Assembly: GCF_018977255.1 (NCBI RefSeq)
Contig: NW_024704812.1
Span: 186,001-250,000 of the forward strand
Direction of reading: 5' to 3'
Length of the DNA: 64,000 nucleotides
Source: Callorhinchus milii
Taxonomy: Eukaryota
The position numbers and the translations under genes were made by a program. Of the stretch, positions 21,201 through 56,055 are shown one piece after another. The number at the start of each line of letters is the position of its first letter. Position 1 is the first letter of the stretch. The notes under the pieces were generated by a model that saw only the letters and a program-made list of their open reading frames with translations, made no database searches and was not told the DNA's origin.

Positions 21201-21266
21201 GTTCCTACCTACTGCTGATAAACAGAGTGCACATCTGTGTGTGTATGTGTGTCTATGTGTGTCTGC

Positions 21267-21298
<32 letters not shown>

Positions 21299-30098: not shown

Positions 30099-30128
30099 NN
30101 NNNNNNNNNNNNNNNNNNNNNNNNNNNN
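30099..30128. other. Assembly gap at the axis of the inverted arrangement
   Basis: 30 N; gene orientation flips across it. Confidence 0.95.
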
Positions 30129-30272
30129 CAACTCTATAGGCGATCCAGTACCAACCTTGAGTCCCATCTCCGATTTTAGCGAAGTGATAGGTCTAATGCT
30201 TGAGCTACAGGTTATTATTAATATTATTATTACAGTGTGATTGATTGACTGTTTGTGTGTTATGTGTTACAG

Positions 30273-30593
30273 AGCAGGTGGGAGCTTTCAGTCTGACGTC
30301 ACTGAGAGTCACATAGAAGCCACAGCCGGACAATCTGTGTACTTCCTGGTAATGCCCAGTACAGGGAAGTTTTACTATAACATGGACAGTCAACACCAGC
30401 TCCACAATCGCATCAGCACAGGGAACAGCAGTGAAGTACTTTGGAGACTACCAGGGTCGGGCTGAGCTTTTACCCCAACAATGCCACTCTACGTCTGGAC
30501 ACAGTGACTCGGCTGATTCCGGTTCGTACTCAGTGATTGTGTTTGAATTAAGCCACGGAACAGCCACAGCAGCTTTACAACTGCGTGTTCACA
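30273..30593 (+). CDS. Gene C IgV exon, several indels
   Basis: homologous to other V exons; e.g. CTGACGTC versus CTGACCGTC, extra T in GAGCTTTTACC. Confidence 0.7.
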
Positions 30594-36500: not shown

Positions 36501-39500
36501 GGCGGGGAACATGGAGCAGGCCGGAGCCCGCTAAGCAGAGGGAGCGGACCGGTTGGTCAGGGATTAGGAGGTCACAGAGGTAGGGAGGGAGGAGTGAGGC
36601 CATGGAGGGCTTTAAAGCTGAGCACCAGGATCTTGAACTGTATCCTCTGAGGGATGGGGAGCCAGTGGAGCCGGGCGAGGGTGGGGACAACTCAAGGTGG
36701 AGCCAATAACTGGACTGTTTGTCTTTGCCTTGTTCAAGGGGCTCCCACACAGCAGATCACATGCGGAGCAGCAGATAAAGGAACAGCATTGGTGTTGATG
36801 TGCTCCTGGGCTGGTGGGGTGCCAGACACTGTCCTTCAGCTGAAGGTCGGACAGACGATTGTCAATGCGACAAACGAGGGGAATGTCACCATCACAAAGG
36901 ATCAGCTCAGCTCCCGAGAGATCTTCACATGTGTTGGACGCCATGTTGTCTCTGACAGTCAATGCTCTATAGTTATTGGTGAGGACTTGAGGGCTGAACA
37001 ACAACAACGATGACAAATTACACTTGTATAGCGCCTTTCACGTCGCAAAGACTTTCCAGGACGCTGCACAGTCAGGGTTTTTGGACCTGAGCTGGGAGTT
37101 GGGGTCAGGAGGGGTGGAGGACAGGGGGGGTGGTGGTGGTTGGGGGTGGGAGGGTGGCTGAATGTGCGGTTGGTCGAAGAGGAAGGTCTTTAGATGGGAT
37201 TTAAGATGTCTCGATGGCGTGATAAGGCGCTGTATCAAACGGGAGGATTATTATTATTCCTACTGACTGTTGGGGTGACTGTGTTGCTGTTTTGCTGAAC
37301 ACTGTCTGTGCTGTTACACAGATAAACCCCAGAGAGCGTCAGGGTCTGAGCCTCAGGTGGAAGTGGGGAAGGAGGCAGATGTGACCTTAGACGTGTCACT
37401 GACAGACACAGTGCGGGTGTCAGACCCTGGCCTGCTGCCCGCACACTTTACATGGTCGAAGGAAGACAACTCCATCACTGGCTCTGACGGCAAGTTCAAC
37501 ATCACCTCAGGACCAACCTTCTCTAAACTGCTCATCAGTAAATTCCAGGCAACCGATCAGGGCACATATCAATGCCATGTCACTAACGCAATGGGAGAGA
37601 ACTTCTTCCAATTTGACGTGACTTTGAAAGGCGGAGGTAAGTTATGATATGTTGACACACACACACACACACACACACTTACACAGTCACAGACACACAC
37701 AAACTCACAGACAGACATACACACCCCACCGCAGACACACACCCACAGACACACACACATACAGACACACACACACAGACACACATAGACACACATACAC
37801 ACACAGACGCGTACCTCTGTTTATCAGCAGTAGGTAGGAACCCGCTGTTAGTCAATTGACGGTTCACTTTCCGGAGGTCATCATAATCCTCCAAAAGAAC
37901 AAAAATCTGGTCAATCAATCCACGACTGTTTGTGGGACACTGCTGTGTGCAATTGGCTGCCGTGTTCCACCCACAAATACACAGTTACTACACTTTACAA
38001 CGACGTGATAAGGCACTGTATCAAATGCGAGGATTGATATGATTTACATGAGGTCTGTGCTGTGGTCTCTGTGTTACGAGAGTATAATCTAATAGAGAGA
38101 CAGTGAAGGTGTTTCTCTCCGCAGTGAATGTGGCCCTGATAGTGGGGACAATAGTGGGGGCTGTGGCTGTGGTGGTCATTGCAACACTCGCTGTGGTGTA
38201 CGTTTACAGGAAACGTAAGGAAGGTGAGGCCGTATATACACAGGAAAACCTTTCACCTTCATGTTCTGTTGTTTATATACCAGTCCAGACCCCCCTCAGC
38301 CACTCACCCTCTCACTGTCCTCTCTCTCTGTCAGTCTCTACCCCTCCGTCTCTCTCTATCTGTCTCTAGCCCCTCCGTCTCACTCTCTTTCACTATCAGT
38401 CTCTCCCACTTTGTCTCTCTCTCTCTATCAGCCTCTCCCCCTCCATTTCACCCTCTCTTTTCTATCAGTCTCTCCCCTTCTCTCTATCACCCTCCATCAC
38501 TCTCAGTCTCTCCCTCTCCATTTCACCCACTCTTTTCTATCAGTTTCTACCCCTCTCTCTCTATCAACCTCCATCTCACTCTCTGTCAGTCTCTATCCAT
38601 CCATCTCCCCCTCTCGCTATCAATCACTCCTCCTTTGTCTTTCTCTCTTTCTGTCAGGCTCTACCCCTATCTCTCTCTCTGTCAGTCCCTCCCTCTCCGT
38701 TTCTCTCCAGGTTCACCGGTTCAGCACCAAACTCTTGTTTATTTTCAAGATTTTCTACGATTTCAAGATACTCTCACCCGTTTTCAAACCCTTTCATGCC
38801 CTGGCACCTCCCTACCTCTCTGACCTGCTCACCCCCACCCCACACCGGCCTCCTATTTGTCCCTCGTTCCCTCCATCCCACCATCAGAGGCTGTGCCTTT
38901 GAATAAACAAGTTGTTGTTTATTTTCCAGCCAAAACACAGCAAGAGACAGAGGGTGAACCATACTACGAGACCATTGATGTCAGAGTAAGTCCTGTGCAG
39001 TCCTGTAGCTCAGTGGTTAGAGTCCTCGCCTCTCAAGCGAGAGGATCCGGTTTTGTTTCCCGGACAGGGCAAAACCTTAGGCAATTGGCTCCCCTTTGAT
39101 ACGACTCAAAGACGTGATAAGGCACTGTATCAAATGCAACAATTATTATTATGAAACCACACAGTCACTACTCTTTACCGTGTATCCTGTGAAGCGCTTT
39201 GAGATGTTATGAAGACGTGATAAGGCACTGTATGAAATGCAATGGTTATTATTATTTACTGCTAACGACATTGCTAATGAATAGCTAAACTGTGTTTGGT
39301 TATATTTTAGGCTTCCTCTGCCAATGTCTCCCAGAAGGATTCAGGCCCTTACATGGTGAGGAAACAAATGGCTGACACGGACAGTGTGTCAGCCCGGCTC
39401 AGTCTCTTGCTGTCCCAACTCTGTCCTTTACGACCCTAAACTGTCCTTCATCCCCTCATCCATGCCATGACCTGATATGCCTTCCCCACCTCCGCCATAT

Positions 39501-40093
39501 TGCCCGGCTCCGCCACTGTCTCTCACCGCAGGCCACCGAGGCCCTCATCCATGTGTTCACCACAAACAGGCTTGACTTTGCCCCTCCCTGCTTGTCGGCC
39601 TCCCCAACGCCTCCCTGTGCAAACTGCAGATCATCCAGAACTAACTCTGCAGCTCCCCATACCCCCTAACAACCTGTCCGCTCTCTCTGCTCAGCGGGCT
39701 CCGGCCTGCTTCACATCCCCCGCCTCACCTGCCCCACCATCGGTTGGGCCTTCAGTTACTCTGCCCCACCCTCTGGAACTCCATCCCACAGTCCCTCCAT
39801 CCCACCCCATCACTCCCTCACCTCCTTCAAGGCCTGTCACAAGACTTTCCTTCAACCTGGTCACCTTCCTAACCCCTACCTCGCCACCATCCACCCCGTC
39901 CTGATCCCAACCCACAGCTCAGATCCAAATCCCTGACTGTCCAGGTCCTTGGGACGTCCTCCTGATGTGAAAGGTTCAGTGTAAAATGTTGTTGTTAGTA
40001 ATGGTCTGTCCGATCTGCATTGTGTTTCAGGACCTTGGAAAGCACCAAAAAGATATTTATCACAATTTACGTCGTAATGGCACCAGGAAGTAG
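30273..40093 (+). CDS. Gene C: paralog with V-A*-B-A-B-C-D-TM-ITAM; leader exon not in the assembly; frameshifts in its first three exons (errors or pseudogene)
   Basis: 11 exons located; the last eight are open and in phase. Confidence 0.75.
31757..32039 (+). CDS. Gene C hybrid A1/A2 exon, 2-nt deletion
   Basis: 283 nt versus 285. Confidence 0.75.
32673..32962 (+). CDS. Gene C first B-type exon, 1-nt deletion
   Basis: 290 nt; TGGAACAT versus TGGACACAT. Confidence 0.75.
33723..34007 (+). CDS. Gene C second A-type Ig exon
   Basis: 285 nt open. Confidence 0.9.
35914..36204 (+). CDS. Gene C second B-type Ig exon
   Basis: 291 nt open; [15 protein letters not shown]. Confidence 0.9.
36739..36978 (+). 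CDS. Gene C VSIG10-like Ig exon
   Basis: 240 nt open; [20 protein letters not shown]. Confidence 0.9.
37322..37636 (+). CDS. Gene C membrane-proximal Ig exon
   Basis: 315 nt open. Confidence 0.9.
38125..38223 (+). CDS. Gene C transmembrane exon
   Basis: 99 nt. Confidence 0.9.
38930..38985 (+). CDS. Gene C cytoplasmic exon 1 ([10 protein letters not shown])
   Basis: 56 nt. Confidence 0.8.
39311..39355 (+). CDS. Gene C cytoplasmic exon 2 (..DSGPYM)
   Basis: 45 nt. Confidence 0.8.
40031..40093 (+). CDS. Gene C last exon (DL..IYHNL..stop)
   Basis: 63 nt including TAG. Confidence 0.8.
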   Translation, partial: DLGKHQKDIYHNLRRNGTRK

Positions 40094-43000
40094 ATAGCTG
40101 TGACAACGTAGATCGATTTCAAGATCCTTTCAATCATCTACAAATCTCTTCAGGCTCTGGCACCTCCCTACCTCTCTCTCCGACCTGCTGACCCCCCAAC
40201 CCACTACCCACTGCCTCCTCTCGGCTGCCTCCGGCCTCCTGCGTGTCCCTCGTGCCCTCTGATCCATCATGGGGGGTCGTATTGTCAGACTTTGGAGTTC
40301 TCTCCCCGATCCTCCGCCTTTCCCCCTTTCCTCCCCTCTCCTATCCTTCTCCCTCTTTTAGATCAAGACTGAAAATCTTTCTCTTTGACCATGCTCACGG
40401 TCACCTTCTGCCTGTCTCTCCCCTCCAACTGGCTCTGCGTCAGGCTCCACCACTCCGAGACGCTACCCTCATAAAGGGCGCTGTGTAAATACAAGTTGTT
40501 GTTGTTGTGACTTATCGGCTCACTGAGAAGTTAATGTTATTTACCAGGAGTTCAGTATTCAGGGTGAAACGTAGNNNNNNNNNNNNNNNNNNNNNNNNNN
40601 NNNNNNNNNNNNNNNNNNNNNNNNNNNNNNNNNNNNNNNNNNNNNNNNNNNNNNNNNNNNNNNNNNNNNNNNNNNNNNNNNNNNNNNNNNNNNNNNNNNN
40701 NNNNNNNNNNNNNNNNNNNNNNNNNCCAAGCAGTAAGTAGGACCTCGCTTGTTAGTCAACAGCCAAGTAATTGCACAGAGGTGCCCCCAAACAGTTGCGG
40801 ATTGAAGTGACCAATTTATCTTTTTTGCAAGAATTACTATTATTACTATTATTATTAGTGAGAGACCTGAGTTCGATTCCTGGCCGGGCGAGGCCTTGGA
40901 CAAGTTTCCTTACTCCACACCCTGATAATAATCCCTCAAAAAAAACAATAATAAATTGGTCATTCCAATCCACGACTGTTTGTGGGACACTGCTGTGTAC
41001 AATTGGCTGCTGTGTTTCACCTACAAATGTAGTCAATTCACTATTCTGTGAAGCGCTTTGAGACGTCTAGAAGACGTGAAAAGCGTATATCAAATGCAAG
41101 GATTATTATTATTATTATTATTGTTGTTATTACCATTATTATCCCAGTCAGCTGGTACAGGACAAGGTACAGGAATCTGAGGCCACGAGCCAGCTTTATG
41201 AGTGAGCTAATCTTACAATGGCTTTCACTTCCACATGAAATTAGTGCTTCAAACCAACTGAAACCTTTGAGCTGTACAGCGATTAACTCCAGACATTCCT
41301 AACTCACAGATCACTGAGCTCCGGGTGGTTAACTGTCAGGGGTTTTATCGTTGGAGTCCTGCAGCTCAGTGGTTACAGCACTCGCCTCACAAGCGAGAGG
41401 ACCTTTGTTTGATTCCTGGGCGGGTCGGGGCATAATGTCCTTATTTCACACGCACACGCCTCTGTTTACACTGCAGTAAGTAAGAATACGGTTGTTAGTC
41501 GACTGGTGGATTACTTTTCTGGGGGTAATAATCCTTACAAAAAATAATATATTGGCTACTTCGATCCACGACTGTTTGTAGGACACTGCTGTGCGCAATT
41601 GTCTGCCGCGTTTCGCCCACAAATATACAGTCAATTCACTTTACAGTGTATTCTGTGAAGAGCTCTGAGATCTCGAAGACGTGATAAGGCGCTATATCAA
41701 ATGCAAGGATTATTATTATTGTTGTAGAATCACAGAATCTTACAACACAGGGGGAGGCCATTCAGCCCATCGTGTCTGTGCCGGTTCTTTGAAAGAGCTG
41801 CCCAATGAGTCCCACTCCCCCGCTCCTACCCCGTATCTCTGCATAGTTTTCCTTTTCAAGTCCCTGTCCAATTCCCTTTTGAAAGCTACTATGGAATCTG
41901 ATTTCATGAGCCTTTCCGACAGTACGTTTCAGATCGTAATAAATCGCTGCGTAAATGTCCCCTCGTCTCCCCTCTGGTTCTTTTCCCAATTATATTAAAT
42001 CTATGTTCTCCCGTTACTGACCCACACACCAGTGGAAACAGTTTCTCCCTATTTACTCTATCAAAACCCCTCATCATTTTGAACACCTATATTAGATCTC
42101 CCCTATCCTCCTCTTGCTCTAAGGAGAACAATCTCAGCTTCTCTCGTCTCTCCACATTTCTCTCTTGTTATCTTCTTCTGGTAATAAAATTCCTTTGGTT
42201 TGACCGCAATAATTCCATCTTGTGTCAGAGGTAAGGAGTGTGGTGGGGTGCACACTATCCCTGACAGTCACTACACAGTCTCTGAACACACAGTCACTAC
42301 ACTTTACAGTAGCATATCCTGCTGAGCTCTTTGAGCCGCTTCAATTAAATGATAATTGGCTGCTGTATTTCGGCTACAAAATACAGTCACTCCACTCTAC
42401 AATGTGTTCTATGAATGAGATGTCTCGACGACGTGATAAGGCGCGATATCAAATGGAATGATTATTATATTCACGTCAGGAGGACATCCCAAAGTGCTGG
42501 ACAGTCAGAGGTTTATACCCAGGTTGGCGGTTGGGATCAGGAAGGGTAGAGGACGGGGAGAGTGAGGGTAGGACAGTGACCAAAGATGTGATGGTCGACG
42601 AGGAAGGTCTTGAAACTGGCCTTGAAGGAGGCGAGGGAGGGGGCGGAGAGGCTGAAGGCCCGACAGCCAATGGTGGGGGAGGCGGGTGGGGGATGTGAAG
42701 CCGGCCGGAGCCTACTGAGTGGAGAGAATGGACAGGTTGGTAGGGGGTGAGTTAGGAGTTCACAGAGGTGGGGGGGAGTGAGGCCATGGAGTGCTTCAAA
42801 GGTGAGGACCAGGAGCTTGAACTGTACTCTCTCAGTGATGGGGAGTCAGTGGAGTCGAACGAAGATGGGGGTGATGGGGTAACGAAACATGACCCTGAAC
42901 ACATCCCTAAACAGTCACTGAACACATCACAAAACACACACTAAACCTGTGTCTCAGTGAGTATCTTGTGGAGTCCCTGTAGCTCAGGGGTTAGAGCGCT

Positions 43001-43598
43001 CGCCTCGCAAGCGAACGGATCTGGGTTCGATTCCCAGGTGTGTCAGGGCAAAACCTTAAGCAAGTTTCCTTACCCCACACACACACACACACACACACTT
43101 TTTACTCACACCTCTGTTTACCAGCAGTCAGTAGGAACCCGGGGGTTAGTCGATTGGGGGATCGATTTCCTGGGGGCAATAATATCTTTTAAAAAATAAT
43201 AATAATGTGGTCACTCAATCCACAACTGTTTGTGGGGACGTCGCTGTGTGCAATTGGCTGCCACATTTCAGCCCCCAAAACACACAGTCACTCCACTTTA
43301 CAGCGTATCCTGTGAAGCGCTTTGAGACGTTTCGAAGATGTGATAAGGTGCTGTATCAGATGGAAGGATTATTCAAAAATTTTTGTAACTAATACGGCAC
43401 TCAATCCTCTACTGTTTGTGGAACATTGCTGTATGGAATTGGCTGCTGCGTTTCTCCCACAAAACACAGTCACTACATTTCTCAGTGTATCCTGTGAAGC
43501 ACTTTGAGAAGTCTCAAAAACGTGATAAGGCGCTGTGTCAAACGCAAGGACTATTATTATAATAATATTAAAAATAGTGAGGGCGTAAAATGTGTCTT

Positions 43599-43659
43599 AC
43601 AGGAAGTAAATCTATTTATCTCATAAATTAACATATTAATTCCTGACAAAGTGAAAGTG
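43599..43659 (+). promoter_or_regulatory. Candidate proximal promoter: ETS core ACAGGAAG and IRF-type AAAGTGAAAGTG (copies 59584-59595 plus; 14617-14628 minus)
   Basis: non-repetitive sequence ~130-190 nt upstream of the ATG, conserved before genes A, D and E; motif match only. Confidence 0.4.
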
Positions 43660-43788
43660 CACCGGGTGCCATTAGAGCCAGTGTCAGGGTCTCTCTACAG
43701 TAACAGTAATGATTAACAGCAGACTCTGCCCTGTGTTCAGGTGACAGCCCATATTCAGTTTGTCTCTGTCTCTCTCCCTAACGTGTAT

Positions 43789-43852
43789 ATGTGGTGGTTT
43801 CCAGCCGCGAGGATGTTGGTGGCTGCTCTGCTCATTCTGGTCACTAATCTGA
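43789..43852 (+). CDS. Gene D exon 1, signal peptide
   Basis: 64 nt, ATG TGG TGG TTT.., GTGAGT donor. Confidence 0.8.
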
Positions 43853-46800
43853 GTGAGTTACTGGTAACAACATAAGCAAAGGTCCATCTCGTTCATCCCC
43901 CACCATCGTGGCAGTCGCTACACATGTCGTGTCCCAAACTATATACTGTGTGTGTCTCCCACTGTGTGTGTATATATATATCTCTGTCTGGATGTGTGTG
44001 TCTGTCTCACAGTATGTGTCTCTGTCTGTGTGTGTGTGTGTGATTATCTGGGGGGTGTCTGTCTCTCGGTATGTTTCTCTATCTATCCGCGTGTATCTCT
44101 GTCTTTCTGTATGTGTCTCTCTGTGTGTCTCTGTGTATGTGTCGCTCTCTGTGTGTGTCTGTGTTTCTGTCTCTCAGTGTGTGTGTCTGTGTCTCTGTTT
44201 GTGAGTGTGTGTGTTCTCTCAGTTTGTGAGTGTGTGTGTGTCTCTGTGTCCGCGTGTGTATGAGTGTGTGTGTGTGTCTCTCTATATGCATTTGTGAGTG
44301 TCTATGTGTGTCTCTGTTTGTCTGTGTATCTCTCTGTTTGTGAGTGTCTGTTTGTGTATCTCTCTGTTTGTGAGTGTCTGTGTGTCGTTGTGTGTCTGTG
44401 TCTCCTTCTCTGTGTGTTTGTGGATGTGCCTGTGTGTGTCTCTCTATGTGTGTGAGTGTCTCTCTGTGTCTGTGAGTGTGTCTATCTATGAGATATCCTC
44501 CCGACGTGAAAGTCGCTACACAAATGGTACCTCTCTCTGCCTCTGTGTGTGTGTCTCTGTCTCGGTGTGTGTGTATGTGTCTGTCTCCTCTCTCTCTATG
44601 TCTTTCTGTGTGTATCTGTGGGTCTATCTACTGTATCCCAAGCTATTATTTTCTAGCAGAAATCTATCTAAATCTATCTTTCATCTTAAACAAATGACAT
44701 TTTCTGAATTGTGCAGTTCTGTAGTTCAGTGGTAAGAGCGCTCACCTTGTAAGTGAGAGATCTGGGTTCGCTTCCCCTCTGGGGGAAACGTTGGGCAAGT
44801 TTCCTTACTTCACACGTACCCACACGCCTCTGTTTACCAGAAGTAAGTAGAAACCTGGTTGTTAGTCGATTGACGGATTGCTTTTCTGGGGGTAATAATT
44901 CCTTCAAAACTTTTGTCCACAAATATAGTCAATTCACCTGACAGTAATTCTGTGAAGCGCTTTGAGACATCTCAAAGACGTGATAAGACGTTAGATCAAA
45001 TGCAAGGATGAATATTATTATTACATTGTGATATTTGGTGATTGACTGTTGTGTGTGTTTTGTATTACAGAGCAGGTGGGAGCTTTCAGTCTGACCGTCA
45101 CTGAGAGTCAGATAGAAGCCACAGCCGGACAATCTGTGTACTTCCTGGTAATGCCCAGTGAACAGGGAAGTTTTAGTATAACATGGAAAGTCAACACCAG
45201 CTCCACAATCGCAACAGCACAGGGAACAACAGTGAAGTACTATGGAGACTACCAGGGTCGGGCTGAGCTTTACCCCAACAATGCCACTCTACGTCTGGAC
45301 ACAGTGACTCCGGCTGATTCCGGTTCGTACTCAGTGTCTGTGTATGACTTAATCCTCGGAGCAGCCTCAGCAGATTTACAACTGCGTGTTCACAGTGAGT
45401 AAACAACAACAGCGCCCTTCACGCGGAGTGTCCCGGAGCACTTTGCAGGGGCCGAGTCTGACCCCGACCTGGGGGGGGAGAGGGAGAGGAAGGCGGTGAC
45501 TGTAAACACGATCAAACTGGAAGGTCTTTAGGTGCGATTTGAAGGTGGGGAGGGAGGGGCGAGGCGTCGGGTTTGAGGGAGAAAGTGACGCAGTGGCTGA
45601 AGACACAGCCATTGATGGTGGAGTGGAGGGGACGAGGGACAAACAAGACCAAGATGGAACCAGCCAAGAGGAGGCACCTGGAGGTGCAGTGGGTGGGTGA
45701 GCAGGTCGGAGAGTTAGGGCAGTACCATGGCATGAAGGGATTTGAAAACGAGTGAGATGATCTCAAAATCGATCTGTTTGGTGATACGGAAACAGTGGGG
45801 CCTGGCGAGGGCGGGGGTGATGGGGTACAGAGTTTAGTGTGTGATAGGGAGCCAGTGGGGCCTGGCGAGGGCGGGAGTTGATGGGGTACAGAGTTTAGTG
45901 TGTGATAGGGAGCCAGTGGGGCCTGGCGAGGGCGGGGGTGATGGGGTACAGAGTTTAGTGTGTGATAGGGAGCCAGTGGGGCCTGGCGAGGGCTGGGGTG
46001 ATGGGGTACAGAGTTTAGTGTGTGATAGGAAAGCCAGGCAAGTGCCAGTGGATCTTGGGAGCAAGAGAGGGGGGGGGGGGGGGCGGGAGAGAGAGAGAGG
46101 AGGGGAGAGGGAGGGGGAGAGTGAGCAGCAGCGACGTATTTGCTCTGCTCTCCTGACAGACTGCAGTAAAGGCTCTGGTCGCTGGGTCTCCCAACCATCA
46201 GCTCCTGCCGCTGACCAGGGAGGGAGGGAGGGAGTGGAAATGGCCTCAGGTTGGATGTGGCTCGTGGATCTTTGACAAACGGGAATCCGGCCCACGGCAG
46301 CCACCCTGCTTCAGAGCATCGGTGAGAGCAGGGTGGGCCAACTGGTGGCCCACGGGCCGCATCCGGCCCCCGGGCCCATTTCATCTCATTCATTAAGCCA
46401 ATAAACCTGGACTGTGAGCTCCCAGAGTGTGGCTTTAAACCATAAAATTGTGCTACCAAATGAGCCAAACTGAGACCTGAATAAACAGTGAATCATAACA
46501 AACAGCGTCAGAAATAAAGTGTAGGGTTCAGCAAAGTGACTCCGAATAGGTTTGTGACAGTGAAGTGAATCTGAACAAGTTTCTCAATGAAATGAAACGC
46601 GTTATCTTACAGCTCTGCTGTCCAATGTGAGCATCAGCCTGAGTCCAGACAAGGAGATATTTATCGAGAATAAAGACACAGTGACACTAAGATGTACAGC
46701 GATGGGATTGTTCCCCACCTATTCCTGGGCACTGGATGGACACCCGTTACCTGTAACCCCACGTTACACACTGTCTGCAGCTAATAGCACTCTGACAATC

Positions 46801-49800
46801 AGCCCCGTACACAGGAGCGACAGTGGAGGGTTTATCTGCACGGCCAGTAACCTGGTGGGCAGTGACAGCAGCAAACCAGTGGCCCTAACCATACAAGGTG
46901 AGTTGGACCAATAGAAAAGTGCGCCCCTTTCTTGCGGAACCCACTATAATCAATAATGTACTTTCCGGCCCTCGGGCCTCGCTGACGTCACTGTGGGGCG
47001 CTCGGCTCCGGACACACAAGCGGCAAACGGACTTCACTAGGATTCACCGCTGTTGTGATTGTCTGTCTGTCTGTCTGTGTGTGTGTGAGTGTGAGTCTGT
47101 GTGTGTGAGTCTGTGTGTGTGAGAGAGGGTGTGGGTGTGTGAGAGAGGGTGTGTGAGAGGGAGTGTGTGTGTGAGTGTGTGTGAGAGTGCGTGTGTGACT
47201 CTCTGTTTGTGAGTGTCTCTTTGTGGATCTGTGTCTCTGATTGTGAGTGTCTGCGTGTCTCTCTCTCTCAGTTTGTGAGTGTGTTTGCATGCCTCTGTGT
47301 GCGTGTGTATGTGAGTGTGTGTATGTTTGTGAGTGTCTGTGTGTGTGTCTCTGTGTCTGTGTATCTCTCTGTGAGTGTCTGAGTATCTGTGTATCTCTCC
47401 GTGAGTGTCTGTGTGTTGTGTGTCTGTGTATCTCTCTGTTTGTGAGTGTCCATGTGTTTGTGTGTGTGTATGCCTGTTTGTGTGTGTCTGTGTGCCTCTG
47501 TGTGTCTGTGGATCCCTCTGTTTGTGAGTGTCTGTGTGTCTTTATGTGTCTGTGTATCTCTCTGTGAGTGTCTGTATGTGTCTCTGTATGTCTGTATTTC
47601 TGTTTATGAGTGTCTGTGTGTTTCAGTGTGTCAGTGTCTCTCTGTTTGTGAGTGTCTGCGTATCTCTGTTTGTGAGCGTCTGTGAGTCTTTGTGTGTCTG
47701 TGTCTCCGTCTCTGTGTGTTTGTGGGTGTGCCTCTGTGTGTCTCTCTATGTGTTTGTGAGTGTCTCTCTGTGTCTGTGAGTGCGTCTCTCTCTATGGGAC
47801 ATCCTCCCGACATGAAAGGCGCTATATAAATGTATGTATCTCTCTCTGTATCTGTGAGAGTGTGTGTCTCTGTGAGTCTGTGAGTGTGTGTGTGTCTCTC
47901 TCTGTGTTTGTGCATGTTTGTCTCTCTCTGTGAGTGTGTGAGTTTCCCTCTGGGTCTGTGTGTATGTCTCTGTGTTTCTGAGTGTGTGTTTCTCTCTCCC
48001 CCAAACGCCCCCAAAAAAGCCACCCAGTCCTTGTTAAAGAAGCAATTATATTTTCCCCAACAATGTAATATGTCCTATTTCCTCATGTCTCGTTTATATC
48101 AATAAAGTGAATACACGTTCATCAATATCCCCGTTCAACTCCCCGCCATTTTCTGCAAAATTTGTCAAAAATGCCCACAATTTTTACAAATATTTCTGCA
48201 CTTTTCTTGGCCCAGAGTGTTGAGCGCATAACTACCGGTATAACGATGCTGCTAACTACAGAACTGCATACTATGTACAGAGACCTGTAGCTCAGGGGTT
48301 AGAGCACTGGCCTCGCAAGTGAGGGGGTTTGATTCCCGGTGGGTCAGGGCGAAACATAGGGCAATTTTCCTTACTCCACACCCACGCCCCTCTGTTCATC
48401 AGCAGTAAGTACCCAGTTGTTAGTTGATTGGTGGATCACTTTTCCGGAGGTAATAATTCCCGTCAAAATACATAAAACAATAATAATAATTTGGTCACTC
48501 AATCCATGACTGTTTGTGGGGATGTCGCTGAGCTCAATTGGCTGCCGTGTTCCGCCCACAAAATACTGTCACTGCACTTTACAGCATATCCTGTGAAGCG
48601 TTTTGAGACGCCTCGAAGACGTGATGAGGTTATATCAAATGCAAGATTTATTATTATAACAACAACAGCTTACATTGATATAGCCCCCCTCACGCAGGAT
48701 AGCGTCCCAGAGCACTTGATGTCTGAATTAAGGGTGAATAATAATAACACTAACAGTGTCGGAAATGCAGTGCAGTGTTAGTAAAGTGAATCAGAACAGC
48801 TTTGTGTTAAGCTTTGTGTCTGAATGAAACGAAACGCTTTATCTTACAGCCTTGGTGTCCAATGTGAGCATCAGCCTGAGTCCAGACGGGGAGATGATGA
48901 TAGAGAATAAGGACACAGTGACACTGAGATGTACATCGATGGGATCGTTCCCCACCTATTCCTGGGCACTGGCTGGACACCCGTTACCTGTAACCCCACG
49001 TTACACACTGTCTGCAGATAATAGCACTCTGACAATCAGCCCCGTACACAGGAGCGACAGTGGAGGGTTTATCTGCACGGCCAGTAACCTGGTGAGCAGT
49101 GACAGCAGCAAACCAGTGAAGCTGGTGATAACTTGTGAGTATATTTGCTGTGGTGTTAAAACCAGATCAACGTGAGCTGAACAGGACAGTGCAGTTGGCC
49201 CACGTGTATCCCTACTTGTTCCAGTCTGGCTCAGCTCTCTATAAGTCAGAAGGTTGTGGCCTCACCTCAGTACTTGGAACTCATGTAGTCCAGACTGAAG
49301 CTCCAATGCAATGCTGGAATATTCTACATTGGGGTTTGATGCTGTGAATAGAGGAACAAACAGTGGGGTCCTGTAGTGGTTGGAGCCCTCACCTCGCAAG
49401 TGAGAGGACTTTGGTTTGATTCCCACCAATTGACTAATAACCGGGTTCCTAATTACTGCTCAGTAAACAGAGGGTGTGTTTGGGAGTAGGGAAACTTGGC
49501 CGACATTTTGCTCTATCAATAATATAATAATCCTTGCATTTGATACAGCGCTTTTCACGTCTTCTGGACGACTGAAACGCTTCACAGAATATACTGTAAA
49601 GTGAATTGACTGTATATTTGTGGGTGAAACGTGGCAGACAGTTGCGCACAGCGACATCCCCACAAACAGCCATAGATTGAAGTAACCAATTTATTATTGT
49701 TTTTTTTTTCTTGAGGGATTATTATCAGGCGTGTGGAGTAAGGAAAGTTGCCCAAGCATTCCCCCACCTGCTGGGAATCGAACCCAAGACTCTCACTTGC

Positions 49801-52800
49801 TCGAAACACTGAGCTACAGGACTCCACTATTGTTATTATCATTGGAAGAGCCGTTGTTTGGATGAGACGTTAAACTATCTGTCTGTTCAGGTTAAAGATC
49901 TCATCACCATTTGAGTATCAATCGGCCACTTGACTGTAGAGGGCCCCACAGACAAACCTAATCTCCTCACTAGACTGCAACACACACACCTGAGCCCGAG
50001 AGGGAGGTTAGGGACCAGGAGCAGGAACCCCGACTCACTTTAAACTCCTTGACCCAAAGTCAGCCTCACGTGACCTGAACTGCAATAATAGTAATGATAA
50101 TCACAATAATAATGATCATAGTCATGATCATCAGAATAATAATCATTCTAGCACTTGATATATCGCCTTATCAAGCGAGAGGACCTGGGTTTGATTCTTG
50201 GGCGGGTCAGGACGACACCTAACGCAACTTTCCTTACTCCACCCACACACCCCCACATTCACCCCCACACACACTATTGTTTGCCTAACAGTAAGCGGGA
50301 ACCCTTGTTAGTCGATTGCCGGATCACTTTTCCAGAGGTATTAACACATCCAAAAAACGTGCCTTACCTCGTCTCAAATCGCTTCACAGAATATATTGTA
50401 AAGTGAATTCACTGTATATTTTATGTGTGAAACGCGCAGCCAATTGCGCTCAGGAGGGACCCACAAAAGGCCAGAACAACAGCAACAACATCAACAAAAT
50501 TACATTTATAGAGCGCCTTTCACGTCAGGAAAACGTTCCAAAGTGCTGAACAGTCAGGTGTCGGGGCCCGAGCATGTGGGAGGGGTGGGGGAGGGGTGAG
50601 GGAAGGCAGAGAGGTGGGAGGGAGACCAAAAGCTCGATAAAGAAAAGGGTTTTGAGACCGGACTTGAAGGAGGCCAAGGAGGAAGCGAGGCCAAGGGACC
50701 GTGGGATGGAGTTCCAGAGTGTGGGGGCAGAGAAGCTGAAAGCCCGGCCAGCGATGGGCCGGGTAGGAGACATGGAGCAGCCGGAGCACACTGAACGGAG
50801 GACGCGGGCAGGTTGGTAGGGAGTCAGCAGGTCAGAGAGATAGGAGGGGGCAAGGCCATGGATGGCCTTAAAGGTGAGGACAAGCATCTGGTATTCCATC
50901 CTCTGAGGGATGGGGAGCCAGTGGAGTCGGCGAGGGTGGGAGTGATGGGGTCACGGAGCCGGGTGCACGAGAGTACACGAGCTGCAGAGTTTTGGATGAT
51001 CTGCAGTTTCTGAAGGGAAGAGTTGGGAAGGCCGATGAGGAGGGAGTTCACGTAATCAAACCTTGAGGTGATGAATGCGTGGGTGAAGGCTTCGGAAGCC
51101 TGATGGCTGAGACAGTGGCGGAGTCTGGCAATATTGCGGAGGTGGCGGAGTCTGGCAATATTGCGGAGGTGGCGGTAGGCAGTGCTGTCATGGCGCGGAT
51201 GTGGGGGAGAAAGGACAGTTCAGGGTCAAACAAGATTCCCAGGTTCCTGTGATACATGTAAAAAGGCTGTTTCTCTCACACTATCATCTGCCATCCATTT
51301 ATCTATCTATGTCATAGTTTAATGCTTTTTCTTTCAGATGGCCCTGATCCACCCACAGTTGAAGTGATCGGGCTGGAGCTATGTGACAGCTTCTTCCCAG
51401 GACAGTACTGTGGGAAGGAGGGAGATTTAGTGACACTCAACTGTCAGACGAAATGTTTCCCAGAGTGTAACTACACGTGGACACATAACACCGCGGTCAT
51501 TGCCGGCAACACCTCACAGCTGCCTATAGAGAGCCTCACGTTCCAAAGCAGCGGGGATTACACTTGCAATGTGGAGAGCGATTACACCACGATTAGCCGC
51601 ACGGAGAAGGTTTCAATCCTCGTGTACAGTGAGTTAGATCTCAGTCAAAGTTGGCACTGTCTAAATAACAACACATGGCATTTACACAGTGGCTTTCACG
51701 TCAGGAGGATGTCCCAAGGCGCTGGACAGTCAGGGACCCACACCTGAGCTGGGGGTTGCTATCAGGAGGGTTGGAGGGCAGGGAGATGGGTGTAGGAGGG
51801 TGACGAAGGCACAGTAGATCGCACAGGTTTGAAGAAGGCGAGGGAGAGGGCGAGGCGGAGCGGTTATGGGAGTTTCATAGGATGGGGCAAATTAGGGCAG
51901 AACGCCGATGATGGAGTGGGCCGGGAAGGGACATGGAGTAGGTTGGAGCCTAATGAGCGGAGGGAGTGGACAGCTTGGTCAGGGGTTAGGAGGTCACAGA
52001 GGAAGGGAGGGAGAAGTGAGGCCATTGAGGGCTTTGATAGTTGAGGATCAGGATCTTGAACAGTATCCTCTGAGGGATGGGGAGCCAGTGGAGCCGGGCG
52101 AGGGTGGGGACAACTCAAGGTGGAGCCAATAACTGGACTGTTTGTCTTTGCCTTGTTCAAGGGACTCCCACACAGCAGATCACATGCGGAGCAGCGGATA
52201 AAGGAACAGCAGTGGGGTTGATGTGCTCCTGGGCTGGTGGGGTGCCAGACACTGTCCTTCAGCTGAAGGTCGGACAGACGATTGTCAATGGGACAAACGA
52301 GGGGAATGTCACCATCACAAAGGATCAGCTCAGCTCCCGAGAGATCTTCACATGTGTTGGACGCCATGTTGTCTCTGACAGTCAATGCTCTATAGTCATT
52401 GGTGAGGACTTGAGGGCTGAACAGCAGCGACAATAACAAATTACACTTGTATAGCACTCTTCACGTCGCAAACACGTCCCGGGACGCTGCACAGTCTGGG
52501 TTTTTGGACCTGAGCTGGGAGTTGGGGTCAGGAGGGGTGGAGGGCAGGGGGTGGTGGTGGTTGGGGGTGGGAGGGTGGCTGAAGGTGCGGTTGGTCGAAG
52601 AGGAAGGTCTTTAGATGGGATTTAAGATGTCTCGATGGCGTGATAAGGCGCTGTATCAAACGGGAGGATTATTATTATTCCTACTGACTGTTGGGGTGAC
52701 TGTGTTGCTGTTTTGCTGAACGCCGTCTGTGCTGTTATACAGATAAACCCCAGAGAGCGTCAGGGTCTGAGCCTCAGGTGGAAGTGGGGAAGGAGGCAGA

Positions 52801-55800
52801 TGTGACCTTAGACGTGTCACTGACAGACACAGTGCGGGTGTCAGACCCTGGCCTGCTGCCCGCACACTTTACATGGTCGAAGGAAGACAACTCCATCACT
52901 GGCTCTGACGACAAGTTCAACATCACCTCAGGACTAACCTTCTCTAAACTGCTCATCAGTAAATTCCAGGCAACCGATCAGGGCACATATCAATGCCGTG
53001 TCACTAACGCAATGGGAGAGAACTCTTCCAATTTGACGTGACTTTGAAAGGCGGAGGTAAGTTATGATATGTTGACACACACACAGACACACACACAGAC
53101 ACACACACTTACACAGTCACAGACACACACAAACTCACAGACAGACATATACACCCCACCGCAGACAACACCCACAGACACACACACACACACACACACG
53201 CAGACACACATAGACACACATACACACACAGATGTGCACCTCTGTTTATCAGCAGTAGGTAGGAACCCGCTGTTAGTCAATTGACGGTTCACTTTCTGGG
53301 GTCATAATCCCTCCAAAAAAAAACAAAGAATCTGGTCAATCAATCCACGACTGTTTGTGGGTCACCGCTGTGCGCAATTGGCTGCTGTGTTCCGCCGACA
53401 AAATACAGTTACGACACTTTACAACGACGTGATAAGGCGCTGTATCAAATGCGAGGATTGATATGATGTTCATGAGGTCTGTGCTGTGGTCTCTATGTTA
53501 CGAGAGTATAATCTAATAGAGAGACAGTGAAGGTGTTTCTCTCCGCAGTGAATGTGGCCCTGATAGTGGGGACAATAGTGGGGGCTGTGGCTGTGGTGGT
53601 CATTGCAACACTCGCTGTGGTGTACGTTTACAGGAAACGTAAGGAAGGTGAGGCCGTATATACACAGGAAAACCTTTCACCTTCATGTTCTGTAGTTTAT
53701 ATACCAGCCCAGACCCCCCTCAGCCACTCACCCTCTCACTGCCCTCTCTCTCTGCCAGTCTCTACCCCTCCGTCTCTCTCTATCTGTCTCTAGCCCCTCC
53801 GTCTCACTCTCCCTCACTATCAGTCTCTCCCCCTTCATCTCTCTCTATCAGTCTCTCCCCCTCCATCTCTCTCTGTCAGTCTCTACCCCTCCGTCTCTCT
53901 CTATAATAATAATAATAATAATCCTTGCATTTGATATAGCGCTTTTCATGTCGGGAGGACGTCCCAAAGCGCTTCACAGAACACACTGTAAAGTGAATTG
54001 ATTGTATATTTGTGGGCGAACGCGGCAGCCAATTGCGCACAGCAATGTCCCACAAACAGTCGTAGATTGGAAATGACCAATTTTTTATTATTGTTTATTT
54101 TTGGGGGGGGGGATTATTATTAGGCGTGTGGAGTAAGGAAACTTGCCCAAGGTTTCGCCCTGACTGGAATTGAACTCAGGTCTCTCGCTTGTAAAGTGAG
54201 TGCTCTAACCACTGAGCTACAGGACTCCACTCTATCTGTCTCTACCCACTCCGTCTCACTCTCTCTCACTCCCAGTCTCTCCCCTTTCATGTCTCTCTAT
54301 CAGTCTCTTCCCTTCTGTCTCACACTCCCTCTATTAGTCTCTATCCACCTCCGTCACAAACTCAATCAGTCTCTACCCTCTCCGTCTCACTCTTCCTCCA
54401 TCAGTCTCTCCCCCTCTATCTCTCTCTCTCTCTCTATCAGTCTCTCCCGCTCCATTTCACCATCTCCTTTCTATCAGCCTCTATCCCCCCTCTCTATCAC
54501 CCTCCATCTCACTCTCTATCAGTCTCTATCCATCCATCTCCACCTCTCTCTTTCAATCGCTCCCTCTTTGTCTTTCTGTCAGGCTTTAACCCTATCTCTC
54601 ACTACCAATCTCTCTCTCTCTCTCTGTCTCTCTATCAGTGCCTCCTCTCCGTTTCTCCCCAAGTTCACCGGTTCAGCAAATGTACAAACTCTTGTATATT
54701 TTCAAGATTTTCTACGATTTCAAGATCCTCTCACTCGTTTTGAAACCCCTTCATGCCCTGGCACCTCCCTACCTCTCTGACCTGCTCACCCCCCACCGCC
54801 CCCACACCGGCCTCCTATTTGTCCCTCGTTCCCTCCATCCCACCATCAGAGGCTGTGCCTTTGAATAAACAAGTTGTTGTTTATTTTCCAGCCAAAACAC
54901 AGCAAGAGACAGAGGGTGAACCACACTACGAGACCATTGATGTCAGAGTAAGTCCTGTGCAGTCCTGTAGCTCAGTGGTTAGAGTCCTCGCCTCTCAAGC
55001 GAGAGGATCCGGTTTTGTTTCCCGGACAGGGCAAAACCTTAGGCAATTGGCTCCCCTTTGATACGACTCAAAGACGTGATAAGGCACTGTATCAAATGCA
55101 ACGATTATTATTGTTATGAAACCACACAGTCACTACTCTTTACCGTGTATCCTGTGAAGCGCTTTGAGATGTTACGAAGACGTGATAAGGCACTGTATGA
55201 AATGCAATGGTTATTATTATTTATTGCTAACGACATTGCTAATGAGTAGCTAAACTGTGTTTGGTTATATTTTAGGCTTCCTCTGCCAATGTCTCCCAGA
55301 AGGATTCAGGCCCTTACATGGTGAGGAAACAAATGGCTGACACGGACAGTGTGTCAGCCCGGCTCAGTCTCTTGCTGTCCCACCTCTGTCCTTTACGACC
55401 CTAAACTGTCCTTCATCCCCTCATCCATACCATGACCTGCTATGCCTTCCCCACCTCCGCCATATTGCCCGGCTCCGCCACTGTCTCTCACCGCAGACCA
55501 ACGAGAACCTCATCCATGTGTTCACCACAAACAGGCTTGACTTTGCCCACTCCCTGCTTGTCGGCCTTCCCAACGTCTCCCTCTACAAACTGCAGATCAT
55601 CCAGAACTAACTCTGCAGCTCCCCATACCCCCTAACAACCTGTCCGCTCTCTCTGCTCAGCGGGCTCCGGCCTGCTTCACATCCCCCGCCTCACCTGCCC
55701 CACCATCGGTTGGGCCTTCAGTTACTCTGCCCCACCCTCTGGAACTCCATCCCACAGTCCCTCCATCCCACCCCATCACTCCCTCACCTCCTTCAAGGCC

Positions 55801-56055
55801 TGTCACAAGACTTTCCTCTCAACCTGGTCACCTTCCTAACCCTACTCGCCACCATCCACCCCGTCCTGATCCCAACCCACAGCTCAGATCCAAATCCCTG
55901 ACTGTCCAGGTCCTTGGGACGTCCTCCTGATGTGAAAGGTTCAGTGTAAAATGTTGTTAGTAATGGTCTGTCCGATCTGCATTGTGTTTCAGGACCTTGG
56001 AAAGCACCAAAAAGATATTTATCACAATTTACGTCGTAATGGCACCAGGAAGTAG
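43789..56055 (+). CDS. Gene D: 11-exon paralog (L-V-A1-A2-B-C-D-TM-ITAM); 1-nt deletion at the end of exon 7
   Basis: all 11 exons with canonical boundaries; ~688 aa if the indel at ~53023 is corrected. Confidence 0.85.
45071..45394 (+). CDS. Gene D IgV exon
   Basis: 324 nt open, Cys-free. Confidence 0.9.
46613..46897 (+). CDS. Gene D A1 Ig exon
   Basis: 285 nt open, ends KPVALTIQ. Confidence 0.9.
47055..47990. repeat. GT/CT-rich compound microsatellite (similar tracts 10340-10800, 29430-30098, 43940-44600, 62945-63840)
   Basis: degenerate (GT)n and GTGTCTCT units. Confidence 0.9.
48850..49134 (+). CDS. Gene D A2 Ig exon
   Basis: 285 nt open. Confidence 0.9.
51338..51628 (+). CDS. Gene D B-type Ig exon
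   Basis: 291 nt; translation identical to gene A exon 5. Confidence 0.9.
52162..52401 (+). CDS. Gene D VSIG10-like Ig exon
   Basis: 240 nt open. Confidence 0.9.
52743..53056 (+). CDS. Gene D membrane-proximal Ig exon, 1-nt deletion giving TGA at 53039-53041
   Basis: 314 nt versus 315. Confidence 0.8.
53549..53647 (+). CDS. Gene D transmembrane exon
   Basis: 99 nt. Confidence 0.9.
53905..54229 (-). mobile_element. Full-length tRNA-derived SINE with (ATT)n tail and 6-bp TSD; gene D only
   Basis: GGAGTCCTGTAGCTCAGTGG A-box head, GAGTTCAATTCC B-box, CTCTAT duplicated at 53899-53904 and 54230-54235. Confidence 0.9.
54892..54947 (+). CDS. Gene D cytoplasmic exon 1 ([10 protein letters not shown])
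   Basis: 56 nt. Confidence 0.8.
55276..55320 (+). CDS. Gene D cytoplasmic exon 2 (..DSGPYM)
   Basis: 45 nt. Confidence 0.8.
55993..56055 (+). CDS. Gene D last exon (DL..IYHNL..stop)
   Basis: 63 nt including TAG. Confidence 0.8.
   Translation, partial: DLGKHQKDIYHNLRRNGTRK

Follow-up and report, generated by a model that had tools for sequence, protein, structure and literature searches.

Exon-restricted homogenisation and probable diversifying selection on a putative ligand-binding face in a CEACAM-like ITAM receptor array of the elephant shark

The N domains of CEACAMs are textbook examples of host receptors that have been reshaped by microbial adhesins, with gene conversion between inhibitory and decoy receptors. 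In primates, positive selection on CEACAM1, CEACAM3, CEACAM5 and CEACAM6 is concentrated in the N domain, on its protein-binding surface (Baker et al. 2022, PMC8860441), where the sites for host proteins and for adhesins overlap (PMC8860441). The CEACAM N exons of Xenopus show the same signature as the locus described here (Zimmermann & Kammerer 2016, PMC5112662). In the literature, CEACAM genes are also known to exist in cartilaginous fishes, without locus analysis, and analyses of the signature have so far concerned mammals and Xenopus.

The array that we describe from the elephant shark, Callorhinchus milii, shares with the Xenopus CEACAM paired receptors (PMC5112662) a conversion restricted to the N exon and ending just past the splice signals, hardly any silent substitutions although the flanking introns are poorly conserved, a fast build-up of replacements in the CC'C''FG strands, and opposite gene orientations with ITAM-bearing members. 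It differs in its holocephalan host, in a longer ectodomain with four to six C2-type domains, and in that the genes analysed all carry an ITAM, without a demonstrated ITIM/ITAM pair. Recurrent conversion limited to the N domain ('domain shuffling') is likewise common to the primate CEACAMs (PMC8860441; CEACAM3 decoy receptors, PMC11646289), as is an activating ITAM-type member, which in primates exists beside CEACAM1. In contrast, sequence identity to the primate proteins is only 24–27%, a microbial ligand is known for the primate side only, and what is compared here are paralogues or alleles of a single genome, not orthologues across species. The reading that we favour, and hold to be probable, is that of a CEACAM-like ITAM array whose N exon cycles between gene conversion and diversifying selection on a putative ligand-binding face.

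Architecture and family of the array genes

The window, a stretch of 64,000 nucleotides that is 100% identical to MU249885.1 (positions 186001-250000), belongs to an unplaced 260-kb scaffold made solely of these genes. Two runs of N in it are masked sequence and not gaps, the public record having letters at those places. The array is arranged as tandem and inverted copies. Searching with tblastn places five copies of the V (N) exon in the window, and the scaffold holds six more, seven being distinct and intact; these counts describe this one assembly, in which the copies may mix paralogues with alleles. The N exon of gene D, which is the focus of this work, occupies 45071–45394 on the forward strand (324 nt, AG acceptor, GTGAGT donor, phase 1 at both ends), comprises 107 whole codons with a split codon at either end, encodes no cysteine and is identical to RefSeq model XP_042201587.1 (P0028). 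The tblastn copies of genes A (12904–13224) and B (28677–29000) lie on the reverse strand, the former having lost 3 nt in C' and carrying the CC'C'' cassette that diverges most, the latter having an identical counterpart on the scaffold outside the window, copy H. Those of genes C (30273–30593) and E (60793–61116) lie on the forward strand; the frame of C is broken by four 1–2-nt indels, its intact twin being copy F elsewhere on the scaffold, and E matches XP_042201588.1 (P0027). A domain-restricted protein search returned three RefSeq models as the only V-bearing proteins, and the other variants come from cluster members and their loci.

Each array gene begins with a leader and an IgV N domain free of cysteine; four to six Ig domains of C2 type come next, followed by a transmembrane segment without charge and a cytoplasmic tail bearing an ITAM. 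In gene D, all of whose exons are on the forward strand, the leader exon (43789–43852, [21 protein letters not shown]) ends in a phase-1 donor, and five further Ig exons follow the V exon, each with AG/GT borders and phase 1. These are two C2-type exons (46613–46897 and 48850–49134), Ig3 (51338–51628), Ig4 (52162–52401) and Ig5 (52743–53056), the last of which is 1 nt short after position 53023 relative to A and C, giving a TGA at 53039–53041. The transmembrane exon (53549–53647) encodes no charged residues and is followed by three cytoplasmic exons (54892–54947, 55276–55320 and 55993–56055, including the stop), which encode YETI and [19 protein letters not shown]. Each of the four complete genes (A, B, C and D) encodes the ITAM, [15 protein letters not shown] (YxxL-x7-YxxL), on separate small exons, and the RefSeq paralogue models carry the same tail as D. 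Only ITAM genes occur in the window. From this cytoplasmic ITAM, the array genes are predicted to encode activating and perhaps phagocytic receptors of the CEACAM3/ITAM-CEACAM type.

The expectation of a CEACAM- or CD2-like N domain is borne out, as cysteines are absent from every V variant and CEACAM1 is the best sequence match among solved structures, at E=9e-5 only and with CD276 and CAR close behind. A Foldseek search of the PDB returns the generic IgV fold and does not discriminate the family here, PD-L1 (TM 0.86) ranking above CEACAM (0.75), which has the highest identity (27%); VCBP3 and LILRB1 turn up only as generic fold or sequence matches. The stalk finds CEA (1e07) as its top solved structure (E=6e-61) and CEACAM1 at 1e-34, ahead of Robo and contactin. 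Neither R63 nor D82 varies among the shark and teleost homologues; the two residues align with R64 and D82 of CEACAM1. Identity to the N domains of teleost and other shark CEACAM-like proteins is about 22–31%, and the database names are CEACAM1/5-like, PSG-like and VSIG10-like. An N domain that lacks the canonical B–F disulfide and has the conserved Arg-Asp salt-bridge pair, phase-1 C2 exons, and a transmembrane segment with an ITAM tail are three features of the CEACAM family present here, and the array is probably one of CEACAM-like innate immune receptor genes.

The N domains of the CD2/SLAM family are also disulfide-less N-terminal V domains that use the GFCC'C'' face, and a weak CD48 match was obtained (E=0.08). 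Unlike the array genes, with at least six Ig domains and an ITAM, those receptors have a two-domain V-C2 ectodomain and ITSM or GPI tails. The six Ig exons and the ITAM do not fit membership of CD2/SLAM, and no other protein comes near CEA as a match to the stalk. Tandem arrays, activating and inhibitory tails, CDR-like variation and conversion are also found in the teleost NITR and DICP, mammalian KIR and LILR, and amphioxus VCBP families. The V or D domains of those families, unlike the N domains here, retain the canonical disulfide, and none of them gives the best match by sequence.

Placement of the variable positions on the N domain

The peptide strings from which variation in the ligand face was originally proposed all occur as written in the copies, and the proposal describes the distribution closely. 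The first 30 residues, said to be nearly invariant, vary at position 13 only; residues 59–88, which span the D and E strands for which the same was said, vary at 68, 69 and 81 only. A and D, expected to differ at about 24 of 108 positions, differ at 22 aligned residues and by a one-codon deletion with an adjacent change, about 24 in all. Among nine V variants, 27 of the 32 variable positions fall in C–C'' (33–58) or F–G (84–106; Fisher p=1.3e-7), so that variation described as confined to CC'C''FG is nearly but not absolutely so, the other five sites being 13 in the A' strand, 31 in the BC loop, 68 and 69 in the DE loop, and 81 in EF. In gene D, the two hypervariable segments correspond to codons 31–58 (45163–45246, forward strand; end of the BC loop, C, C' and C''), with a divergence of 12–13% compared with less than 1% in the framework, and to codons 89–101 (45337–45375, forward strand; F strand, FG loop and G strand), with a divergence of 13–21%.

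An AF2 model of the D V domain (pLDDT 93), on which the strands were assigned, places the variable sites on the C, C', C'', F and G strands and on membrane-distal loops, in line with the proposed mapping. Along strands C, C'', F and G, variable residues make up 12 of 16 positions in the outward phase and 4 of 17 in the core phase (p=0.004), where outward and core facing are deduced from strand phase. The changes in core phase are conservative (I/V, V/A, D/E), while the variable positions of the second segment, 89, 91, 97, 99 and 101, are in outward phase. N-glycan sequons toggle among the copies at positions 33, 41 and 55. A HMMER alignment pairs variable positions 37, 44, 89 and 91 with S32, Q44, Q89 and I91 of human CEACAM1, which we take to be contact residues for adhesins and for homophilic binding.

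This surface may be expected, under the reading that we favour, to bind a ligand; the ligand would presumably be microbial and the genes presumably expressed, and a pathogen, by analogy only, would be the driver of diversification. The same face could instead be tuned to an endogenous partner, whether through homophilic and heterophilic CEACAM-CEACAM contacts or an inhibitory sister receptor. It is established that mammalian CEACAMs bind homophilically and heterophilically through the GFCC'C'' face, and a candidate partner exists in the sister gene P0005/P0031, whose membrane-proximal domains (Ig3–Ig5) are 95% identical to those of the array and are joined to a different transmembrane segment and tail. 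The motifs of that tail, D[FL]YA[QK]V, do not conform to the canonical ITIM. The N exon of this gene is missing from its 16.7-kb scaffold, and no partner N domain was recovered for comparison. Self-ligand systems, however, usually co-vary under purifying selection, without an open-ended excess of replacements among paralogues, and the presence of one ITAM tail in all genes of the window fits an array of sensors. As such, we consider an endogenous partner an unlikely explanation.

Homogenisation and replacement in the N exon

The introns flanking the V exons diverge by 3–27% among copies, more than the exon itself. The upstream introns are of two types that cannot be aligned upstream of −70 nt, and the 5' ends of the exons are nonetheless identical. 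Only the last ~70 nt of the intron (45001–45070 on the forward strand in gene D) align among all copies, and divergence between the two types is 16% in −70 to −1 and 65%, effectively random, in −300 to −71, as measured by pairwise BLAST and a ±300-nt alignment split by intron type. A ±700-nt multiple alignment around five V exons was discarded, as its 'divergences' of 40–60% are meaningless where flanks are not collinear. Against this background, none of 50 silent sites in the V framework has changed, while introns change at 0.19 per site (p=6e-5), and intron divergence would predict 15 silent differences in place of the 0 observed (p=2.5e-7). A framework without silent differences beside diverged introns indicates that the exon has been homogenised by gene conversion; since the introns of the V exon are themselves more diverged than the exon, conversion restricted to the exon is essential to the explanation. 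In the four-gamete test, 50 of 210 site pairs fail (Rmin=5), from which it follows that the two variable cassettes reassort. The segment trees also conflict, copy I grouping with A in CC'C'' and with B and D in FG.

The mechanism that we consider probable would have two steps. Paralogues, often lying in inverted orientation, would exchange sequence by conversion or recombination, which would repeatedly overwrite the exon together with ~70 nt of upstream intron, erasing silent differences and reassorting the CC'C'' and FG cassettes around a frozen D–E framework. Replacements would then be fixed preferentially at outward residues of the A'GFCC'C'' sheet and in the membrane-distal BC, C'C'', DE and FG loops, including gains and losses of N-glycan sites, which would amount to diversifying selection on the putative ligand-binding surface.

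The rates of substitution support the second step in part. Minimum-mutation counts give 39 nonsynonymous to 5 synonymous changes for the whole exon (p=0.016) and 35 to 5 for the variable segments (p=0.025). Maximum-likelihood omega on a single tree (GY94) is 3.99 for the exon (LRT against 1, p=0.0011) and 3.36 for the variable segments alone (p=0.0067), and pairwise omega ranges over 1.1–5.3, being undefined where synonymous differences are zero. The tree-free comparison of three independent nearest pairs (B–D, A–I and F–G) yields 25 nonsynonymous and 0 synonymous changes (p=7.9e-4 for a neutral ratio of 3:1). For the framework alone the counts are 4 and 0, and omega is undefined (iqtree at its upper bound of 50). 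With separate trees for CC'C'' and FG, which take recombination into account, omega remains above 1, at 2.4 and 2.6, but both values fall short of significance (p=0.13 and 0.19; combined p=0.13); silent changes number only 5–6 in total. The predicted diversifying selection is in this way upheld by the replacement excess over the exon and left short of significance segment by segment.

Could the variable segments simply be unconstrained surface that escapes homogenisation and drifts, while purifying selection and conversion hold the core and framework? In addition to the segment-wise likelihood ratios, such neutrality is compatible with the clustering of silent changes in the variable segments (5, compared with 0 in the framework; p=0.006), which means that part of the contrast stems from coalescence times that differ along the exon. 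When copies of the two intron types are compared, the variable segments diverge by replacement about as much as the introns do and not more, and other ectodomain exons are also near an omega of 1 (0.85 for all C2 exons and 0.7–1.7 for other exons, none different from 1). Neutral drift is nonetheless improbable in our assessment: every omega estimate exceeds 1 (1.9–4.0), the whole-exon test and the three recent pairs depart from the neutral expectation, and, within each intron type, replacements accumulate faster in the variable segments than changes do in the flanking introns (p=0.03 and 0.025).

An assembly artefact, in which the 'paralogues' would mostly be uncollapsed haplotypes or mis-joined, unpolished duplicates and the pattern allelic polymorphism or error, is quite improbable. 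The scaffold is unplaced and 260 kb long, frame-breaking indels occur in A (Ig4), B, C and D (Ig5) of this assembly, and B and H are identical; moreover, the inverted twins C/F and D/D' are 98–99% identical and differ chiefly by indels, the broken member of the pair alternating. Yet what separates the seven distinct intact V exons is substitutions that respect codons and not indels, these exons are found in two unalignable intron contexts, and two more variants exist in proteins of an earlier annotation (P0022 and P0023). Even if some copies were alleles, the pattern would remain, and would then be read as selection, balancing or diversifying, acting on this face.

The original prediction also contrasted a variable N domain with stalk exons identical between A and D. 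This identity holds for Ig3 at the nucleotide level (291 of 291 nt; probably the 'B exon' whose translations had been called identical, as they are) and in translation for Ig4, the transmembrane exon and the first two cytoplasmic exons. It does not extend to the two C2 exons directly after V (5 of 90 and 9 of 93 residues differ), to Ig5 (2 residues) or to the third cytoplasmic exon, in which A has YMNL and D has YMDL. The introns of this block carry 22 substitutions in 2196 positions, 0 in 533, 2 in 341 and 1 in 488 (about 99.5% identical). Since they are as alike as the exons, the block reflects recent duplication or conversion and not a selective contrast; stalk identity accordingly lends nothing to N-domain-specific selection where introns differ by 0–1% substitutions, and the A–D stalk exons were dropped as a neutral or constrained control. 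That strong purifying selection keeps the stalk identical, with the N domain alone released or driven, is very improbable despite those identical translations, given the equally identical introns and the stalk exons of older copies, with omega of 0.7–0.85 and, in Ig3 compared with B/C-type genes, 14–16 of 97 residues different (83.5–86.7% identity; 17–18.5 nonsynonymous substitutions). The practical lesson is that exon-to-exon contrasts in mosaic gene arrays are to be calibrated on neighbouring introns.

Implications for CEACAM-type receptors

A further reading, which we offer tentatively, is that the array constitutes a germline 'repertoire' of ITAM sensors, in which the D–E framework may serve as a recombination hinge while CC'C'' cassettes, with switchable glycans, and FG cassettes reassort combinatorially among inverted paralogues. 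If it were true, a CEACAM-type arms race with cassette shuffling would already have been present in a holocephalan, at the base of the jawed vertebrates, or alternatively would have arisen there independently. As placed on the model, at least seven N domains differing at about 30 surface positions may provide a natural variant set for binding studies. The pattern is already known from mammalian and frog CEACAMs, and the elephant shark is a further case. Its signature of exon-limited homogenisation, replacement-only CC'C''FG divergence, reassortment and ITAM tails would take the mechanism to the deepest-branching jawed vertebrates.

The gene D N exon and its array

The N exon of gene D (45071-45394, forward strand), which encodes the outermost IgV-like domain, is 324 nt long, is bounded by ...ttacAG and GTGAGT, and lies in phase 1 at both ends, as is usual in Ig-domain exons. 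Its in-frame product, QVGAFSLTV...LQLRVH, has 107 residues, contains no cysteine and is assigned to I-set/V-set by Pfam. Searched against solved structures, the sequence is closest to human CEACAM1, although the match is weak (E=9e-5); CD276, CAR and other CEACAMs rank next. An AlphaFold2 model with nine homologues as input is confident (pLDDT 93.3) and predicts a V-set fold with strands A (7-9), A' (13-16), B (22-28), C (35-40), C' (44-50), C'' (53-56), D (64-67), E (72-75), F (84-92) and G (96-106). Foldseek places this model in the generic IgV fold, with PD-L1 at TM 0.86; CEACAM1/5/6 reach TM of about 0.75, yet their identity is highest (24-27%).

Five paralogous genes were located in the window with tblastn and BLASTN: A (14487-1468) and B (29000-18153) on the minus strand, and C (30273-40090), D (43789-56055) and E (59725 to past the window end) on the plus strand. 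Gene D comprises a leader, the N exon, two C2 exons, three more Ig exons, a transmembrane (TM) exon and three small cytoplasmic exons. The D and E proteins are identical to RefSeq models named PSG4-like, and their database paralogues carry the names CEACAM1-like, CEACAM5-like, VSIG10-like and hemicentin-like. The window is 100% identical to MU249885.1:186001-250000, part of an unplaced 260-kb scaffold that holds six more N exons: two are intact (G, and F, the unbroken twin of C), H matches B exactly, I resembles A, and D' and J are broken. The scaffold thus has seven different intact N exons, and two further N-domain variants, P0022 and P0023, come from an earlier annotation as proteins only.

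Several exons carry small frame lesions. Gene D Ig5 lacks 1 nt near its end (53023-53041), giving a stop TGA at 53039-53041, and the RefSeq model P0028 spans this lesion with an unusual splice. Gene A Ig4 also lacks 1 nt (6161-6164), while B and C contain several indels, with 1-2-nt frame breaks in the C V exon (30273-30593) and in B Ig4/Ig5/TM (20817-22249); the broken exons are otherwise near-identical to other copies. The twins C/F and D/D' are 98-99% identical, differ mostly by indels, and alternate in which member is broken. The pattern suggests haplotig duplication or errors in unpolished long reads, and real pseudogenes are possible. The variation among the seven N exons is nevertheless real, since they differ by in-frame substitutions and sit in different intron contexts; each may be a locus or an allele.

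The array has further structural features. Gene C and the 5' part of D lie in a 15-kb stretch (30200-45916) whose inverted twin, at about 137-153 kb of MU249885.1, is 98-99% identical and differs mainly by indels. This may reflect a false duplication or haplotig, or else a palindrome of very recent origin. B and C are arranged head to head as an inverted pair (arms 21257-27475 and 37724-31519, 97.9% identical; centre about 29.6 kb) with an N run at 30099-30128 between them, and both carry an additional C2-Ig3 exon pair (V-C2-Ig3-C2-Ig3-Ig4-Ig5); no leader exon for either was found within the window. The N runs at 40575-40725 and 56538-56667 are masks rather than assembly gaps, because the public scaffold record has ordinary letters there. 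Long CT/GT-rich low-complexity blocks fill several introns (about 43900-44700, 47000-48050, 53050-53260 and 62900-63800), and a roughly 60-nt minisatellite lies just 3' of the D N exon (45750-46050); these hamper intron alignment and may promote rearrangement. Short ORF fragments containing a 16-residue string recur in introns, for example at 42945-43100, 48256-48400 and 54950-55050, and look like tRNA-derived SINE copies.

Location of variation in the N domain

The peptide strings and the A-D difference of about 24 of 108 V positions in the original prediction are all correct, the latter being made up of 22 aligned residues, a one-codon deletion and a change next to it. Variation had been described as confined to the CC'C''FG face, and this holds for most of it: 27 of the 32 positions that vary across nine N variants fall in C-C'' (33-58) or F-G (84-106), segments that make up 49 of 107 residues (Fisher p=1.3e-7). 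The five outliers are position 13, in the A' strand, which belongs to that sheet as well; 31, in the CDR1-equivalent BC loop; 68 and 69, in the DE loop and variable in A only; and 81, in the EF loop. Variable positions in strands C, C'', F and G are out of phase with those of the conserved hydrophobic core (W38, V54/Y56, Y86/V88/V90 and L102/L104/V106), with 12 of 16 outward-phase positions variable versus 4 of 17 in core phase (p=0.004). Three of these four core-phase changes are conservative (I/V, V/A, D/E), and the fourth is G/R at position 96. Judged by strand phase, this distribution is what residues that point out of the A'GFCC'C'' sheet would show.

A HMMER alignment equates positions 37, 44, 89 and 91 with S32, Q44, Q89 and I91 of human CEACAM1, which are contact residues for adhesins and in homophilic binding. 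N-glycan sequons also toggle among copies at positions 33, 41 and 55 (45169-45177, 45193-45201 and 45235-45243 in D): N33 occurs in A, B and I, together with N55 in A and I and with N41 in B, and D, E, F and G have N41 only. The N70 sequon, on the DE side opposite to the variable face, is constant.

Gene conversion and probable selection among N exons

The identity of the stalk had been offered as the contrast to this variation. Between A and D, Ig3 is indeed nucleotide-identical, and Ig4, TM and cytoplasmic exons 1 and 2 encode the same residues; the third cytoplasmic exon differs by one residue (YMNL in A, YMDL in D), and the C2 exons adjoining V differ at 5 of 90 and 9 of 93 residues with omega about 1. 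In comparison with the B/C-type genes, 14-16 of the 97 Ig3 residues are different. The contrast itself is confounded, because identity is just as high in the A-D introns of the Ig3-TM block (22/2196, 0/533, 2/341 and 1/488 substitutions). The 3' halves of the two genes (49135-53700 versus 4680-9237, minus strand) are about 99.5% identical, introns included, and so stem from duplication or conversion of a block in the very recent past. By contrast, the introns flanking V and the two C2 exons (C2a and C2b) are 13-24% different, and A and D are mosaics of blocks of very different age.

The right control is provided by the N exon's own introns, which show both conversion and face-specific replacement. 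Two intron contexts surround the N exon, type I in B, D and H and type II in A, E, F, G and I. Between types, introns are unalignable beyond about 70 nt upstream and 23-27% different downstream, whereas the exon framework differs by only 0-0.9%; within type II the corresponding values are 6-11% and 0-1.6%. The framework has no silent changes in about 50 silent sites versus 0.19 changes per intron site (p=6e-5), and the three nearest pairs show no silent differences where 15 are expected from intron divergence (p=2.5e-7). Silent sites cannot be kept constant by purifying selection acting on the protein, so these data indicate exon-limited homogenisation. Mosaicism among the N exons is seen directly: the four-gamete test fails for 50 of 210 informative site pairs (Rmin=5 in 321 nt), the A-type CC'C'' cassette is paired with three different FG cassettes (A, I and P0023), and the CC'C'' and FG segment trees conflict.

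Replacement changes outnumber silent ones in the N exon. In pairwise Nei-Gojobori comparisons, omega ranges from 1.1 to 5.3 and is undefined for pairs that lack synonymous differences (A-B, 25.3 replacement and 1.7 silent; B-C, 15 and 0). Minimum-mutation counts without a tree give 39 replacement versus 5 silent changes over seven N exons (p=0.016), and 35 versus 5 in the two variable segments, codons 31-58 and 89-101 (omega about 2.2, p=0.025); the few silent changes all lie within these segments (5 versus 0, p=0.006). Under the GY94 codon model omega exceeds 1 for the whole exon (3.99; LRT against omega=1, p=0.0011) and for the variable segments only (3.36, p=0.0067), but with separate trees for CC'C'' and FG the values of 2.4 and 2.6 are non-significant (combined p=0.13). 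The nearest pairs B-D, A-I and F-G, which are phylogenetically independent and give a tree-free comparison with no recombination bias, show 25 replacement versus 0 silent differences (binomial p=7.9e-4). Omega elsewhere is 0.85 (C2), 0.72 (Ig3) and 1.7 (Ig4+Ig5+TM, few changes), none differing from 1. The feature is real and its original description largely correct. Its reading as diversifying selection, acting on the CC'C''FG face in a CEACAM-like N domain, is probably right in substance but relied in part on a confounded control and left out gene conversion.

Tail, family and proposed mechanism

In all four complete genes, the 15-residue tail end is a canonical YxxL-x7-YxxL ITAM, with a D-to-N variant (YMNL) in gene A. 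The 19-residue ITAM stretch is divided between two small exons in each of them (D, 55276-55320 and 55993-56055, plus strand; A, 3446-3402 and 1527-1468, minus strand; the same exons in B and C). The TM segment has no charged residues, and for the stalk domains CEA (E=6e-61) and CEACAM1 (1e-34) outrank every other solved protein. Judged from sequence, this architecture of a disulfide-less N domain, CEA-like C2 repeats and an ITAM tail is that of an activating CEACAM-family member, resembling CEACAM3 and the ITAM-CEACAMs of dog and Xenopus. CD2/SLAM membership is ruled out by domain number and tail.

A YETI motif lies upstream of the ITAM, with H/Y variation immediately before it. A sister gene (P0005/P0031/P0033) on another C. 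milii scaffold of 16.7 kb is 95% identical over Ig3-Ig5; P0005/P0031 differs in its TM, carries a long tail in which the D[FL]YA[QK]V motif recurs, and may be an inhibitory or endocytic partner. The 16.7-kb scaffold assembly contains no N exon for it. The motif occurs four times in the sawshark homologue P0006.

For Xenopus CEACAM N exons, conversion confined to the exon and its splice signals has been reported, along with a lack of silent changes, poor conservation of the flanking introns, a build-up of replacements in CC'C''FG, and genes in opposite orientation (PMC5112662). The elephant-shark N exons carry the same signature of conversion and replacement, and N-domain shuffling has likewise been reported in primates (PMC8860441). 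The most likely mechanism has four steps. The N-domain face would bind a ligand under conflict, microbial by analogy; successful cassettes are spread and reshuffled by conversion; recognition is altered by new replacements and glycan switches; and the ITAM would then signal. The main value of these observations is that they extend the CEACAM mechanism of conversion and diversification to a holocephalan.
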